A DNA stretch of 63,837 nt, filler included, from Reticulomyxa filosa (taxonomy: Eukaryota > Protista > Foraminifera): NCBI GenBank assembly GCA_000512085.1. It is 25 parts of 25 records of this genome, joined end to end, with 100 filler letters (N's around TTAATTAATTAA, not from the genome) between each part and the next. Parts side by side here need not be neighbours in the genome. Positions count along the whole stretch, not along the records: positions 8,697 to 11,548 come from ASPP01024748.1; 24 more parts are not named here. One strand, 5' to 3'. Positions within the stretch are counted from its first letter, which is position 1. Each line of letters starts with the position of its first letter. The position numbers were made by a program, and so were the translations under genes. The notes below the pieces were generated by a model. That model did not search any database. It was not told where the DNA came from and saw nothing but the letters and a program-made list of their open reading frames with translations. Positions 1,947 through 11,548 of the stretch are shown one piece after another.

Positions 1947-3190
1947 TTGTGCGGACATTGTGAGGGATTGACTGTGATTGATATAGGTGGACAATATTTG
2001 TACAAATACCAAATTCCATGCCACCACGCCGGTGGTTTATTTTTGTGGCATGCACATCACCACGGGAGTGTGTATACTCAAGTCGGTGGCGGGGTGTACG
2101 GAGCTTTAGTCATGGAGGAAGACCAAGAACAAGAAGGCTTGCCTGACTGGTTGGTGAACATGAACCAACTTGTGTTGGCCATTCATGAAGTCAAACTGAC
2201 CTTTTTGTCTGAGTACATGTGCAATGCCACTGGCACGTGTTGGGATAACGTGGTCAAAGTTGACAGCACTGGCCCAGATTCATTTTATTTAGTCAACGGA
2301 AAGTACCAACCCACGATTTGTATGAACTCTGGAGAATGGCTTCGGTTGAGGTTTATTAGTGTCATTATGACAAGAGAAATTAGTTTCAATGTCACCAAAG
2401 GCACTAGTGGAGACAAGTGCACTTTACAACTTCTTGCAAAAGACGGAATATGGCTGAATGGCAAAAGTGGCACTTCTCCTAGAACAGTTGGAGGTATTTA
2501 CTTGCCAAGCGCTGGCAGAGCTGATGTTGCATTTTACTGTCCGGGGGCTAAAAGTGGAAAAAATACTTATCAGTTCCATTTTCACTTTTTTTTTTTTTTT
2601 GTCTCCCCTCAAAAATCGTTTCTTTTTAATTTACGTTTTATATTTTATTTATATTATTTAACCCTTTTTTTTTTCCGTTTGTTTAGAATTCGAGACCCGG
2701 CTAATACAGTAGTTGCAACTATTGTGGTAAGTGGAACGCCGACTCAGCCCAACCCAGCGACACTCACACCGTTTCGAGCAATTCGTCCTTCGTACATCCG
2801 AACAGATTTGTTGAACTACACAGGGAGCTTTCAACAATACAACGGACTAAATTACTGGAATATAGCTGTCGGGTTCAATAGTATTAACAGTATCTCTTTC
2901 GTAAATGAAACAGACTACTTGGCAACGATTTCTGTCGATACAGTCAACGAGTGGGTGATCACCAATGTTCCCGGTACTTTACGAGTTTAGAGCAAAAAAA
3001 TACGCATACATAGCAAAAGACGAAAACAAAAAAAAAAAAATCGACAAATATTTTCAAAAACTGTGCTTTTTTTTTTTCTAAAAAAAAAAAAAAATACGGG
3101 TACACTTATAAATAGCATCCCTTACATACACATCTGTTTCCAATGTTTATGGTGCAAGCCGATAGTGTTGGAACCGAAAGGGTTTGAATT
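1947..3190 (+). CDS. Multicopper oxidase (cupredoxin domains), intron-containing, partial
   Basis: YQIPCHHAGGLFLWHAHHHGSVYTQVGGGVYGALVM (copper-binding HxH motif), YLVNGKYQP, GEWLRLRF, AGRADV, VNEWVITN; after a probable intron, HPLHTHLFPMFMV from 3116. Confidence 0.8.
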
Positions 3191-3313
3191 CCGGGTTTTT
3201 AAAAAACCCGGAANNNNNNNNNNNNNNNNNNNNNNNNNNNNNNNNNNNNNNNNNNNNTTAATTAATTAANNNNNNNNNNNNNNNNNNNNNNNNNNNNNNN
3301 NNNNNNNNNNNNN

Positions 3314-3474
3314 TTGCGTCCGGTGGCGTTGGCAACCTGCAGCATCTGGTGGAAGGCGTCACGCTGGGCAAGGCCGACGCGGTACTGGCGGCCAGCATTT
3401 TCCACTTTGGCGAATACACGGTGCGCCAGGCGAAAGAAGCCATGCGTGCCGCCGGTATTGAAGTCCGTCTGTGA
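3314..3474 (+). CDS. hisF: Imidazole glycerol phosphate synthase cyclase subunit, 3' end (bacterial)
   Basis: Frame from 3316 reads [52 protein letters not shown]. Confidence 0.95.
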
Positions 3475-3484
3475 GGTTGGCCGC

Positions 3485-3880
3485 ATGACACCCCCGAATT
3501 GGCTGGATGAAGTGAAATGGGACGACAAGGGCCTGGTAGTCGCCATTGCCCAGGACGCCCACAGTGGCCGCGTGCTGATGGTGGCCTACATGAACCGCGA
3601 GTCGCTGCAGCTGACCGCGGAAACCGGCATCGCCCATTACTGGACCCGCTCGCGCCAGAAACTGTGGAAAAAGGGTGAGGAGTCCGGCCACACCCAGACC
3701 GTAAAAGAGCTGCGTCTGGATTGTGACGGCGACGTCATCACCATGCAGATTGAACAGGCAGGCGGCATTGCCTGTCATACCGGGCGCGAAAGCTGCTTTT
3801 TCCGCGTCTGGCGCGATGGCCAGTGGGTTGTCACCGACGAGGTGCTGAAAGACCCGGACGCCATCTACCACTCACACTGA
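3485..3880 (+). CDS. hisI: Phosphoribosyl-AMP cyclohydrolase
   Basis: [51 protein letters not shown]; GAGG upstream of ATG 3485. Confidence 0.95.
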
Positions 3881-3978
3881 ATTTGATCTGCGGCAAGGGT
3901 TAACGCCAGTACCACCTGTTACAAGGATGTCACATTATCGACATATACTGGCGGGGCGCCGGTAGCCGGGAGACGCAT

Positions 3979-4305
3979 ATGAACGCGACCGAAATTTTCA
4001 AGAATATTGGTGATACGCTGGAGGCCCGCAAGGAAGCCAGCCCAGCTTCTTCCTACGTGGCCTCGCTGCTGCACAAGGGTGAAGATGCCATCCTGAAAAA
4101 GGTGGCCGAAGAGGCCGCCGAAGTGCTGATGGCCTCCAAAGACAAGGACCGCCTGCACCTGGTGCGCGAAGTGGCCGACCTGTGGTTCCATTCCATGGTG
4201 CTGCTGGCGCACCACGGCCTGCGTGCCGAAGATGTGGTGATGGAGCTGAAACGCCGCGAAGGCATTTCCGGCATTGATGAAAAAGCGTCGCGTACGCAAG
4301 GCTGA
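3979..4305 (+). CDS. hisE: Phosphoribosyl-ATP pyrophosphatase
   Basis: SSYVASLLHKGEDAILKKVAEEAAE..EVADLWFH; GGAG RBS; operon position. Confidence 0.95.
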   Translation: MNATEIFKNIGDTLEARKEASPASSYVASLLHKGEDAILKKVAEEAAEVLMASKDKDRLHLVREVADLWFHSMVLLAHHGLRAEDVVMELKRREGISGIDEKASRTQG

Positions 4306-4317
4306 ACGGAATCCGAC

Positions 4318-4638
4318 ATGAGTGACTGTATTTTTTGCAAGATTGCCAAGGGCGAGATTCCGGCCAAGAAAGCCTACGAAGACGACGACGTGGTGGTATT
4401 CCACGATATCAACCCCAAGGCGGACGTGCACTTGTTGCTGATCCCCAAACTGCATGTAGAATCGCTGGCGCAGTGTGACATCCGCCACCAGCAGATACTG
4501 GGCAAGCTGTTGCTGCTGGCGCCGGTACTGGCGGCCGAGCACGGCCTGGCGCAAGGTTTCAAGACGGCCATCAACACCGGTGTCGGTGGTGGCCAGGAAG
4601 TTTTCCACCTGCACGTACACGTGTACGGCAATCGATAA
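4318..4638 (+). CDS. Histidine triad (HIT) nucleotide-binding protein
   Basis: MSDCIFCKI..FHDINP..GGQEVFHLHVHV. Confidence 0.95.
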   Translation: MSDCIFCKIAKGEIPAKKAYEDDDVVVFHDINPKADVHLLLIPKLHVESLAQCDIRHQQILGKLLLLAPVLAAEHGLAQGFKTAINTGVGGGQEVFHLHVHVYGNR

Positions 4639-4942: not shown

Positions 4943-7900
4943 TATGTGTGTATGTGTGTATGTGGACAAAGTAACAGACCTTCCAATTGTCATAGCGAAT
5001 GGTAACACTATGTAAAAACAATTGATTTGCTCCTTGTTGATCGTACAGAGTTTGCTGGTACAGACTTGCCTTCATCCGCAACAGCTCACTTCGATAAGGA
5101 GCATTGGCATACAAAGGATCCAACAAATGACAATTGCTTAATTTTTGAGCGGCGCAATTGAGATTGTCCAAAGCCAGCGTTTCCATTTTGCCCAGAAAAG
5201 CCAGCATTTGCGACGACGCTGGTGGCAAGTGGTCGCCGGACAAGCAATTGTCTCGTCGAATGGCAGAGGTGTCCATGTCGATCAAAAACTGGGTCGACGA
5301 CTTTGTGGCTGTGTTTGTCTTCAATTCATTTTTTTTTGACAAGAGATAGGAAATATTTCATCTCGCGAATGCGCAACAAATTGGAATCACCGCCGTCGAA
5401 TTGGTAGTCTTTTATCAAACAGGAATTTTCGACAACATCATGAAAGATATTGGACGCGTTTGTCCCCTGAGCTTTGTTGATCAGTTTCGAAACGTCATCC
5501 AAAAGCATCATCCGGCTTTCGGTGTGGTAGTACTTCCTGGCGATTTGGGCCATGCGCAACGTATACCACATCTTGTCGTCCATCGACTGCGCCAAGATTC
5601 GGTCCACAGTGTCTTGCGACGAAGCTGACTGTGACGACACGTCGATGCTCTTGTCTCTCAGCACATGACGCATCAGCGACAAGATGTTCAATCGAAACGA
5701 TATCAAGTCACTCCAATCATGTAATTCCTCCCAATGTGCTGGCAATGACGCCCTCCATTCATTGCTTTTGTGAAAAGTAAGGAAAAAAGAGAGAGAGAGA
5801 GAGAAGGGAGAAGGGAGAAAAAAATATTTATATTTCATTTAAAAAAAAAAAAAATAATAATGCAAAAAAAAAAGTACCGAAAATGGACATTTTGATAATA
5901 CAAATCGGACAGAAAATTGGAGTCCAAAGGAGCACGCCTGATAAGCAATGCCCCGGCCAAGATGGAAGAAGCTCTTTCCATGTCTTTCAAGGCGTGAACT
6001 CTTCGCAGCAAGGGGATATGCATGGGACTTAAATAGCCATTGGTACGTGCGTAGGACCAATCGATAAACTCGCCGGCGTTGGAAGGGGGGAAGGAAGTGG
6101 ACGTTTCCACCTTGCACAAGGACTTGGCCAGCTGCAAGCGATACTCTCGCCAAACCCAGTTCAAATCTTCGCACAGGTCGGTCATGACCTTTTCTCGGAT
6201 TTGAGCAGATAGCTTTGCACCCGGATGGACTCGACTGTATAGGTCCTCCACTTTTTGCTGTAACTGCGACGCCACCGCGGCGAGTTTGAAGGACGAATGG
6301 AAATGCGTTACGGCTTCGTTCATAAACATCCAACACCAATCCTGGCTGCTTATCTGGGGATAAATGATGTCGTTGTTTTTGACTTCGTCCAAGTGCCAGT
6401 CTTTCCATTCCTCATCTCGAGAAGAAGAAGAAGAAGAAGAAGAAGAAGAAGAAGAAGAAGGGAGGGGGGGGAGGTAATGACTGCTGTTGTTGTTCTCCGT
6501 TTTTTGATATCTTCGATTCGTCCTTTTCATCTTGACTTTGCCAATACGACTGCAACGAGGATTGATCGCTTTGCGTCAGATGTCTAAGCAAGTGAGAGCA
6601 CCCGTTTTCTTATGCGACTGCACCACGTAGAAACGCAGGTCATCGTATGCATTATGATTCTTAAAGAACAATGCAAACTCTTTCAAATGTCCGCATGCAT
6701 CCTCATCTTCGCCATTGCCATTGTCATTGTCATTGTGTCATTGTTTGATTGATGACATTGGGACTCCAAAAACAACTCCGGGATCAATTGCTCACGTGAA
6801 AAGTCGTCCAACCAATCCCATTGATTGAGCTTTCGGCAACACTCCACGTAATGTCTTTGCCACAACGTTACCTCGCTTTCCGCAATGATTTCCGTGTTTT
6901 GCGATTTGAAATACTTGGCTTGCAATTTGTCATAGCACTTTTGGGCTTTGCCATATTGTCCGTACTGCTCGTATGTCAACGCCGACATGGTACCCAGGTT
7001 GGTGCAACGCTTCTTCCAAAATGCATAGGCCAGGTCATGACATCCCGTTTGCTGATACAAGTCCACCAACAAGTCTCCGCCGCGCGTAAATTCCCCAATC
7101 TCCACCTGCGCTCGTCTGTCTTTCAAAACATGCTTGCGGGCTTTCGGGTTGTCCCTTGGATGCAGCATCACTTCGTAATGAATCCATTTGTTGATCAAAT
7201 CTATCCCTTCAAACACACACCCAAACTCTTCTGCAAATCGAATCACAATGTCGTACTGATCCAACTTCAACACGCCGTCGTGACAAATCCCAAATCCTCG
7301 CATCAAGTCACGACATGCCAATTGAAACCACTGTCGAACATTGTGCTTGTTGCTATTCACAAGGGAAGGCAACATTATCGGGGGTGTCGTGGTTGTCGCG
7401 GCCGTGCCAATCCCAGTCCCAGTGCCAGTTGAAGTGGGTCCATGCTTGTTACTCAAAGAGGCATTTTTATTGCCATTTCCAAAAAAAATGGCCAACCAAG
7501 ACGGATCCAAACTCAAGTTGTGAAATGTCTCGGCAATATTTCGAAAAGGTTTGGAACGATTAACTCGGTCCTGTTCATTAACTGTCCCCCCGTATTTTTT
7601 TTCGTTTTCTTGCGACTGCTGTCTTTGTTGGTATTCGTTTTCCCAACTGTCCATTACATTCTTGTACTTATAGTACAAAGGCTTCACTATTTGATACCAT
7701 ACATTACGCGCCACTGCCGGGGATAAATAACACCACGCGACCAAAGGCTTCATTATGTCGTTTACTGTCAGTTTTGATTGCTGCGTTAACATGTGTCGTT
7801 CCATCGCTACAATCTCTTCCAATTCCTTCACTTTTTCCAAGTCCATTTTTTTCCAATCTTCTGTGGTTCATTTTATATATTTTGTGGTTATATAAAAGTG

Positions 7901-8696: not shown

Positions 8697-9372
8697 ATTC
8701 CTCTCTCATGTAATATACTCGAAGCAATGATAATGATGCACTCATGTTCTTTTCTAAAAATCTTTTCCATAGTTTACTTATTTTATTCATCTTTTCAATA
8801 TATCTTTGATGTATTGGTGCTTCATCAATCAAATCATTCGCAGCAATTCGCAATTGATCTGGAGAGAATGGATATACGTGGACATTGTTTTGGGTGTAAT
8901 GAAATTGACAATATTGTCTTTTCGAAAAAGTCCAAGCTACTACAATATGATATTCCAATCCCTTCCAATTGATTTTCAATGACCACTTCGAATGTCGTTG
9001 TATTTTTATTTTATCTGTACAAAGTTCTTTTCTTATTTTGTCGATAACTTGCTTAATCCATTCGAGAATATCATTGTGTTTTTTTTGGAGTGAATCAATA
9101 TTATTATACTCCAAATGTCTTTCCTTTAAATGATATAAGAATACCAAATATCCACAAGATACATTAGGAATGACAAGTTGTTTTTGTACACACCCAGATA
9201 ATGTCACTCCATAAACACACCAAAATGGGCATTTTTTATCGTAATGAGCCGCTTCTTTGTGTTTGTCCAGTAAACTGTTCACAAGGTCGTTGGCAAGCTC
9301 ATAGTAAGTAGGAACTGTTATATCTTTAAGCTTACTTTCTAATGACTCCTGACATATCCGATTATCCGTCAT
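8697..9372 (-). CDS. OAS/cGAS-DncV-like nucleotidyltransferase-fold protein lacking catalytic Asp residues, 3' truncated by contig end
   Basis: ATG 9372, ~225 open codons. SGCVQKQLVIPNVSCGYLVFL aligns without gaps to OAS [40 protein letters not shown] to RALSF..VEFDVLPAF; MSASLSLLRVYYMR to FSTCFTELQRDFLK. Confidence 0.6.
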
Positions 9373-9579
9373 GTTTAAAAGATATGGAATTCTCAATAGA
9401 GTTTTTTGTTCATTGTTGTGGATTTATGCGTTTAGCATTCAAAGTAATTGATAGTATTCTATTTGATCTTGCACAATGTACTTAATTTTTTTTGCTGCTA
9501 CTATTCTCTTATAAAACGAAATTTAATTTAATCAAAGAAAAGATGTGTAATTGCTTAAGTCTACAGTAAACAAGAATTA

Positions 9580-11548
9580 ATGGTTAATTGTCCTAATTTG
9601 ATGTCTGCATGTAATGTAAATACAGCACCATACACCAATTTATGTGGACTTCGGTTTGGTGTAATATTGTGTGAACAAGATCGCTGGTAGAAAAATATGA
9701 CATGAGTCACCATTATCCAATTCCAAATTCTTATCAATTACTAAGATCACCAATCTTTCTTTTAAATATCTTTGAAACCTCTTTAACATGCAATTAGTTA
9801 TGGACGGTAAGTCGACTTGAATAATTGTTTCAGCACTAAAACTTCTGCTGTCAAACTTACAATATTTTCTCGAAATTGTACTAAATTATATGACAACACT
9901 GTTTCCGGGCACTATGTTTGAATATATATTCATTTACAAGTTTAAGTGATATGTCTTTGGCTGCTTGACTTTTCAGAGGAATTACTTCAACATATCTCGT
10001 GAAGCATCCATTATCGTCATAACGAACAGATAACAATCATCTGTTTCATGTAATGTGCCAACTATGTCAATAGCCACAATTTGGAATGGTCTTATTGCTG
10101 AGAAATGTTGAATTATACAGTCTTTGGACTGACTCTTTCTTTGTCACTTGGCAGGTGAAACATTATTCGCAAAATTTTTTTACATTTATGGACAATCTTT
10201 ATATAATTAAGGTTATTATTCTTTTTGAACATAGAGACTGTGATAACGCATGTGAGTGAAAATAAGCAAGTACGTCATACTTCGACACAACAGGTACTAC
10301 CACTTTGCTTGTACGTGTTAATAAATTTTGTTTATATATTGACATCTACTTTCTTATAAATAATGAATGCCAACTCGAAGAAATGTATATAGTGCGTTTT
10401 TTACTTATGTCAGTTTCCTTTTTATGTTTTTTATTTCGTTGTCATGTCCCTGAGCTTAGAAAGCTTTTTAAGTCGAATAATTAGTCGAAATATCTTATTT
10501 CGATTTTGCATTGAATATCGTTAAGATGACTTTCTTTGTATTTGTGCTTTGTTATTTGATTTTGATAACGATTATGTATAAATAAACGAATATAACTCCT
10601 TTTCTGATTTATGTCAGTTCAACTGATAATTGTCAAATTTCTTTGATTGGAACAAGTTTTCCTTCTTGTATTTGTAGTATTTGTCAGAAGCATCACATTA
10701 AACTATAAATAACTCATTTTGTATTGGATGTAGCAGCTTTGCATTTCAATTGTCTTTTTAATTGTCCAAATATTTCTTCATGTATTATAGCCATTTTCAA
10801 GTCATATCCTTTTGCCGTAGCTGTGATAATTTTGCAGTTAATTCCGCAATATTAAGTATGAAACGTACAATCCATTGAACCATTCCGAGAAATTGTCCAA
10901 ATTTCTTTTCGCTTTGATGCTTAGATATTTTTAATGTTTTGTTTCTGTTGCAATCAGTATGTCGTCTATGTAAATGTCTACATTTTCTAAATCTCTAAAT
11001 ATAGACACAACAATACGTTGAAATGTTGCTAGTGCGTTTAATAATCCAAATCCCATAAGATTTCATTCGTATAACCCATTTGGAGTGATAAATGCAGTGT
11101 TATGTTGGTCTATCTCGCGTATTTGAACATGTAGATATCATGACTTGATATCTAATTTGGAAAATATTTTCTTTTCATTCAGTCATTTATCCTTTTTCTT
11201 GACTAATACTACTGGTTCCGCAAATTGAGAAAAGTTTTTCGTTATTATTCATACTAGTTCTAATTCTTTTACCTGTTTCTTCACTTCATATTGATGTTCG
11301 TGGTTTATAAAGTATAGCTTATTTTTTATTAGTAGAGTTCCAGGTTTCAAATCAATTTTCATTTCTGCATCTCTAAGTTTCACTATGTTGAAACTATTTG
11401 TTGCTAGCAATTGTCGATTTTGTGCATTATGTATTGTACGTATTTGGATGCTTTTTTATTTATGATTGCTATGGCTTTGGTATATATTGGCTTTTTGACT
11501 GGCCATGCACTTTTACTGTTTGGAGTCAATTTCGTGTTAATTGCCTTT
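9580..11548 (-). mobile_element. Degenerate Ty3/gypsy-type LTR retrotransposon pol (RT then integrase) with stops, frameshifts and deletions
   Basis: RT: IDLKPG..FAEPVVLVKKKDK; FSKLDIKS*YLHV..TAFITPNGLYE*NLMGFGLLNALATFQR..IYIDDILIAT (YIDD at 10961-10972). Integrase: CFTCQ, RPFQIVAIDIVG, FTRYVEVIPLK, PETVLS, SPHKLVYG. RT-before-IN order is gypsy-type. Confidence 0.9.

Follow-up and report, generated by a model that had tools for sequence, protein, structure and literature searches.

What does an OAS-like protein do in a protist once the residues that its relatives use for catalysis have been replaced? The question is raised by an open reading frame (ORF) of Reticulomyxa filosa, a freshwater foraminifer (Rhizaria), and to our knowledge almost nothing is known of the role of OAS-like proteins outside animals. 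The ORF lies in a window of 63,837 nucleotides, filler included, in which 25 parts of 25 records of the R. filosa genome (GCA_000512085.1) are joined end to end. A preliminary description made from the DNA had read it as a catalytically dead member of the OAS/cGAS-like nucleotidyltransferase (NTase) family. Our analyses place it in a clade of pseudo-OAS proteins that is probably maintained by selection as a non-catalytic relative of an innate-immune sensor, with its pocket repurposed. OAS-like genes in protists, R. filosa included, and pseudo-OAS domains in vertebrates have been described before; the new element is the clade, with its fixed Cys/Tyr/His pattern, its copy number of at least 21, and an extra C-terminal module.

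Gene structure

The part of the window at positions 8697 to 11548 is the whole of one contig of 2852 bp (ASPP01024748.1). On its minus strand, an ORF runs from the first in-frame ATG, at 9372, through 225 open codons to the contig edge at 8697 (Table 1), encoding the N-terminal spine helices, the NTase core, and the first C-lobe helices. The four segments singled out in the preliminary description were all recovered, at residues 60 to 77, 94 to 108, 131 to 147, and 210 to 223, and in the AlphaFold2 (AF2) model they fall on beta1-loop-beta2, the long helix, beta3-5, and the first C-lobe helices, respectively. That description had also called the ORF uninterrupted and intronless; all of the codons are open, but the absence of introns is true of this exon only, as the ORFs of paralogs end at a GT donor with conserved exons beyond it.

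Table 1. Features on contig ASPP01024748.1, in coordinates of the window
Feature	Position	Strand	Evidence
OAS-like NTase-fold gene, first coding exon, truncated by contig end	8697..9372	-	ORF reading; paralogs; fold model (pLDDT 87.7)
Residues 210-223, first helix of OAS1_C-like lobe	8704..8745	-	HMMER alignments to 9h1z, 1px5, and 4rwn
Strand beta5 (residues 139-148), His142 at the position of the third catalytic Asp	8929..8958	-	Alignment, HMM register, motif table, model
Cys73-Gly74-Tyr75 at the start of beta2, position of the OAS Asp-x-Asp metal ligands	9148..9156	-	Family alignment, HMM register, motif table
Strand beta1 and GS-loop equivalent (residues 54-61), final Ser-Gly-Cys versus Gly-Gly-Ser in OAS	9190..9213	-	HMM register, motif table, model strand 53-60
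5' flank, about 45 bases, alignable to L002, the closest full paralog locus	9373..9417	-	Locus comparison
Decayed Ty3/gypsy-type pol remnant, upstream of the ORF	9564..11455	-	Reverse transcriptase match; many stops and frame changes

At the paralog loci, the ORF ends in Ile-Ile-Arg-stop, and the stop lies inside the GT donor. In locus L001 (ASPP01004733.1), a GT...AG interval follows the end of the paralog ORF, and exons that correspond to the C-terminal ends of the long gene models P0020, P0034, and P0035 lie downstream at 3797-3901 and 4081-4380; exons matching the same parts lie at 3393-4088 and 4243-4338 in L002. Full-length gene models of close paralogs have 327 to 364 amino acids, and some have 553 to 830. 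Because conserved exons follow the GT donor in both loci, the short models (327 to 364 amino acids, around 345) are probably truncated, the annotation having read the GT donor as Arg-stop, and the complete proteins probably carry a conserved C-terminal extension of a few hundred residues that has no recognizable family. For the extension of the long paralogs, neither a Pfam family nor, in a word-index search, any relative was found, and comparison with the Atlas gave weak leads only, below noise level. Four divergent, longer proteins (P0023, P0026, P0030, and P0031) have a common C-terminal extension of their own, with a conserved Ile-Glu-His-Cys-Phe after the OAS-like core, and the stretches between their core and extension resemble translated introns. 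P0020 and P0035 also have a Val-Glu-His-Cys motif in their extension, and the extension may therefore be older than the split between the two R. filosa branches.

Genomic setting

Three family members lie within 9.6 kb and in mixed orientation in L001, at 651-1448, 2672-3712, and 6547-7534. For the third, tblastn gave two pieces that overlap, suggesting either a short intron or a change of frame, and at the second the annotated model P0007 (2517-3583, with an intron) conflicts with an uninterrupted match. Among five paralog loci compared, similarity was confined to the coding region and, in the closest locus (L002), to the short 5' flank given in Table 1; at the other loci, similarity to the window begins inside the coding region. 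Neighboring genes also differ between loci, with a short-chain dehydrogenase in L004 and uncharacterized genes elsewhere, and are unrelated to one another. Carriage of the gene by a transposon is rejected on this comparison.

The retroelement remnant upstream of the ORF lies outside the gene and outside the duplicated unit. One reverse transcriptase (RT) piece with a YIDD box, at 10934-11062, matches the Ty3 RT 4ol8 with an E value of 2.9e-7, and a second RT piece lies at 11252-11455. Integrase-like pieces were read from motifs only, at about 10070-10345 (H..H and CxxC), 9985-10143, and 9564-9737, and had no Pfam match. All of the pieces, those of the RT included, are broken by stops and frame changes.

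The window contig (at 8697), L003 (at 3068), and L004 (at 5562) all end at nearly one position of the gene, just after a Ser-Leu-Ser-Leu-Leu-Arg segment. The assembly seems to have broken here because the copies are too alike in this stretch, and the copy number is therefore probably underestimated.

Relatives and probable placement in the OAS branch

In searches of 5.8 billion and 1.84 billion proteins, the relatives recovered for the window ORF were about 35 R. filosa proteins with 22 to 83% identity, named "hypothetical proteins," as had been anticipated for such a gene in a protist. The sole match outside Reticulomyxa, P0032 (952 amino acids, from an ENA metagenome), aligned over four short stretches (E 9.6e-5) and may be spurious or a very distant relative; it also has a sub-threshold match to Tox-MPTase5. 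Run against the 5.8 billion proteins, a profile of the whole family (A3) likewise matched R. filosa proteins only and gave no link to another species. One further protein, P0037 (504 amino acids, annotated as a casein kinase II regulatory subunit), combines, on a contig of 2290 bp, a family fragment with a casein kinase II beta annotation; it is probably a gene-model fusion and had no Pfam match at an E value of 0.01.

The window clade by itself did not reach OAS in sequence searches. Pfam scans of the window ORF and 20 paralogs gave only unrelated sub-threshold matches, with OAS1_C and NTP_transf_2 in none; phmmer with the window ORF against PDB sequences had no match; and an HMM of the window clade alone found no OAS or NTase chain in the PDB. 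In phmmer, the window ORF matched two divergent R. filosa paralogs, P0024 (RFI_14454, EukProt P025644; E 2.7e-24) and P0025 (RFI_15844, EukProt P024262; E 5.3e-22), and P0024 alone matched OAS2 in the PDB (E 0.004). The A3 profile matched human OAS2 (E 3e-6) and OAS1 (E about 0.1), and the only other PDB chain listed was an unrelated one of 91 residues (E 0.53). This match extends into the Leu-Val-Lys-His-Trp and ALELL helices of OAS1_C, and in OAS2 its best local match by HMMER is the inactive domain I. Since the clade-only profile misses OAS and no Pfam threshold is passed, the link between the window clade and OAS is made through divergent paralogs and predicted structure, and as far as sequence is concerned it is a transitive one.

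An 18-residue ungapped match to OAS1 had been noted in the preliminary description. The family HMM gives the same register, but with only 5 identities the match is at chance level when taken alone. The OAS register as a whole did hold: HMMER places the family profile on OAS1 and OAS2 alike for the GS/DxD segment, the strand of the third Asp, and the fourth segment, in which residues 210 to 223 align to the part of OAS1/OAS2 just before the Leu-Val-Lys-His-Trp helix. In the full-length paralogs, FLKxWQ and SLEII-type motifs align to the C-lobe helices of OAS1/OAS2, so that the OAS1_C-like helices expected of complete copies are present in both motifs and model; the window copy has the first OAS1_C-like helices only, its contig ending there.

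Structure prediction revealed the Pol-beta NTase fold in the window fragment as well as in a full-length paralog. The AF2 model of the fragment (225 residues; pLDDT 87.7, pTM 0.85) has the topology beta1-loop-beta2-helix-beta3-beta4-beta5 behind two long N-terminal helices, and all 50 of the 50 matches listed for it have an NTase fold. For paralog P0009, which is 63% identical to the window ORF (pLDDT 76.8, pTM 0.75), the top Foldseek matches were CdnC (6u7b, E 3.1e-6), OAS2, and OAS1, with E values from 3e-6 to 1.5e-5, and all further matches were NTase-fold proteins as well. In VIA structural alignments, porcine and human OAS1 came first (Z 16.2 and 16.0, up to 273 residues), and the P0009 model aligned to OAS1 through residue 345.

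These scores leave room for a different ancestry, namely a Pol-beta NTase fold of another lineage, poly(A) polymerase (PAP)/TUTase-like or DZF-like, with no kinship to OAS. For P0009, PAP (Z 16.0) and NF90/NF45 (Z 15.3) tie with OAS1 (Z 16.2) within error, and for the window fragment ILF2/ILF3 (NF45/NF90; Z 11.0) and PAP score marginally above OAS1 (Z 10.5 to 10.6). The OAS1 alignments are, however, the longest for both models (181 to 182 residues for the fragment) and include the N-terminal helices, which the shorter PAP alignments skip. The family profile, too, matches OAS chains only, bar the 91-residue chain already mentioned, with motifs agreeing in both lobes; no PAP or TUTase chain was matched by it in the PDB, and no DZF family was matched in the Pfam scans, the likeness to DZF proteins being structural only. 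Close paralogs, moreover, sit in the OAS superfamily of a published phylogeny (PMC10732462). Descent from another lineage is highly improbable on this evidence, and model, profile, and published phylogeny, three independent lines, agree in pointing to the OAS branch of the cGAS/DncV-like Pol-beta nucleotidyltransferases.

The same study defines a eukaryotic OAS superfamily nested in bacterial clade C and describes OAS-like proteins as the most widespread CD-NTases in eukaryotes (Culbertson and Levin 2023; PMC10732462). RFI_14454 and RFI_15844 are two of five R. filosa sequences in its CD-NTase trees and alignments, whereas none of six EukProt identifiers of the window clade appears in its supplementary files, which were partly incomplete as consulted.

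Replacement of the catalytic residues

The preliminary reading of the catalytic motifs as GC and C/Y/H was borne out across the clade. In the family alignment, all members with the region present have Ser-Gly-Cys, Cys-Gly-Tyr, and His, with single deviations in P0010, P0021, and P0022; Cys61 replaces the serine of the GS motif, and Cys73, Tyr75, and His142 replace the three metal-binding Asp. Paralogs with an intact GS/DxD/D set, which had been proposed as a search target, exist in the same genome: RFI_14454 and RFI_15844 have Gly-Gly-Ser, Asp-Gly-Asp, and Asp, and P0026 is nearly intact (Gly-Gly-Ser, Glu-Ser-Asp, and Asp). The remaining divergent members have degenerated to varying degrees, and the other R. 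filosa branch varies freely at the catalytic positions (E/S, N/A/N, and E/R/A). The two intact R. filosa proteins have core motifs and OAS1_C-like helices in common with the window clade, but the latter has lost GS/DGD/D and stands apart from them on a long stem. In a maximum-likelihood tree of R. filosa sequences only, which joins the window clade to P0024 and P0025, 21 clade members including the window copy group together with 100/100 support, their stem measuring 1.06 changes per site, and the window copy falls in a young subclade of seven (support 100/99). One replacement event followed by expansion is the simplest reading. With the carboxylate triad absent, members of the clade are predicted from their sequences to be incapable of two-metal nucleotidyl transfer and would make neither 2'-5' oligoadenylate nor a cyclic nucleotide.

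The predicted loss of catalysis has not been accompanied by loss of constraint. Pairwise NG86 dN/dS, an estimate that had been suggested for this ORF, was 0.14 to 0.38 in all 21 pairs formed by the window ORF and six paralog coding sequences, values that are rough given the pairwise method, an AT-rich genome, and some dS above 1. The clade is under purifying selection. Within it, conservation is highest in the two blocks of the former active site, with a mean entropy of 0.52 bit for residues 54 to 80 and 0.40 bit for residues 136 to 157, compared with 1.16 bit overall. Cys61, Cys73, and Tyr75 are nearly invariant and His142 and Cys155 invariant, and the C-lobe Lys aligned to that of the OAS Leu-Val-Lys-His-Trp helix, which in OAS1 presumably contacts the ATP triphosphate, is retained. 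Because the replaced residues are near-invariant and the active-site strands are the most conserved, the pattern argues for a pocket that has been repurposed rather than merely dead: a merely dead pocket should drift, as in the other R. filosa branch, whereas the pocket of this clade is frozen in a new state.

Selection on the clade could still leave the window copy itself as a dead gene fragment or a passenger of a repeat-rich genome, without a function of its own. The gene is cut off by the end of its contig and has a decayed Ty3/gypsy pol some 190 bases upstream, in the same orientation; the family is also highly multicopy, with several contigs broken at the same point of the gene. Against this, the reading frame is open over all 225 codons, comparison with the nearest copies gives a dN/dS of 0.20 to 0.38, every clade-invariant residue is kept, and similarity among the five compared loci stops short of the retroelement; a dead copy is accordingly very unlikely.

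Possible functions of the clade

If the clade has been kept as a non-catalytic pseudo-OAS, as we think probable, it would have retained the two-lobed OAS scaffold, with the cleft as the most conserved part and the C-lobe Lys in place. The protein would then most likely bind a nucleotide, a nucleic acid, or a metal as its ligand, within or next to the former active site and without turnover, and the signal would be relayed through protein contacts, probably via the C-terminal extension contributed by the downstream exons. Mammalian pseudo-OAS units provide the precedent: OASL, domain I of OAS2, and domains I and II of OAS3 act as non-catalytic ligand-binding modules whose output is by protein contacts. 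Like the R. filosa clade, these vertebrate units have the OAS two-lobe fold, have lost the carboxylates, and are retained under selection, and the family's matches in structure and profile searches include OASL (4xq7, Z 14.9), domain I of OAS3 (4s3n, Z 14.2), and OAS2 (9h1z). Unlike them, the clade represents an independent loss in a rhizarian protist, with a fixed Cys/Tyr/His set in at least 21 copies, and its C-terminal addition is a conserved module instead of ubiquitin-like domains or further OAS repeats.

Comparison with active relatives sets further bounds on the likeness. Mammalian OAS1 has the same order of secondary structure, and its fourth segment and Lys-x-Trp helix align to the family, but identity is 12 to 14%, and the triad and the GS serine are replaced here; we also know of no interferon system in R. 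filosa, unlike in mammals with OAS1. CdnC, a clade C CD-NTase, resembles the family in structure; it is an active prokaryotic enzyme encoded in an operon with HORMA/Trip13, whereas the R. filosa genes have introns and an AT-rich eukaryotic context, and no HORMA/Trip13-like partners were found on the paralog contigs examined. The many tandem copies fit a fast-duplicating, defense-type family, but a role in immunity would be no more than an analogy.

The frozen pocket could also mean new chemistry. Cys61, Cys73, and His142, perhaps together with Cys155 and Tyr75, might form a new metal site (e.g., for zinc) or a thiol/imidazole catalytic site, so that the old NTase cleft would carry out another reaction or serve as a redox or metal switch. 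Invariance or near-invariance of these residues across at least 21 paralogs points this way, as does constraint on the active-site blocks (0.40 to 0.52 bit against the 1.16-bit mean) where plain loss predicts relaxation, at the very positions that vary freely in the other R. filosa branch. The strands may, however, be conserved only as part of the folding core, and we know of no precedent for a Cys/His active site in an NTase fold; we regard such a neo-enzyme or metalloprotein as unlikely. Were the near-invariant Cys/Tyr/His residues a new catalytic or metal site, "pseudoenzyme" would be the wrong word for these proteins. In its broadest form, which we hold as a speculative proposal with the odds against it, the fixed Cys/Tyr/His cleft with Cys155 would be a new functional site on the OAS scaffold, either a metal- or ligand-gated switch or a catalytic center, coupled to the C-terminal module.

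Inactive copies might instead act on intact ones, pairing as regulatory partners with paralogs of the RFI_14454/RFI_15844 type or, as decoys, competing with them for an activating ligand. This would resemble NF45/NF90 heterodimers, or inactive OAS2 and OAS3 domains that serve an active one. NF45 and NF90 are catalytically dead, still bind nucleotides, and act by dimerization; these DZF proteins (ILF2/ILF3) are alike in structure to the family but have no profile similarity to it. Intact and substituted paralogs do occur in one genome, and the best matches in structure include DZF heterodimers and OAS2, yet at least 21 inactive copies face a handful of intact ones, and the clade's own conserved C-terminal extension suggests an independent output. 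We consider a partner or decoy role doubtful and favor the ligand-binding pseudo-OAS set out above.

Significance

The practical value of these observations is modest for the present. Surveys of homology that depend on profile thresholds miss clades such as this one: none of the six clade members checked was found in the consulted part of the PMC10732462 data set. If the fixed cleft does prove to be a new functional site, the family of at least 21 copies would amount to a sensor system expanded in one lineage, that of a giant multinucleate foraminifer, and to an independent protist counterpart of vertebrate OASL/OAS3-type signaling. With a few intact copies beside a large, selected clade of substituted ones, the single genome of R. 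filosa offers a clean test case for the way in which nucleotidyltransferase immune sensors turn into non-catalytic signaling modules.
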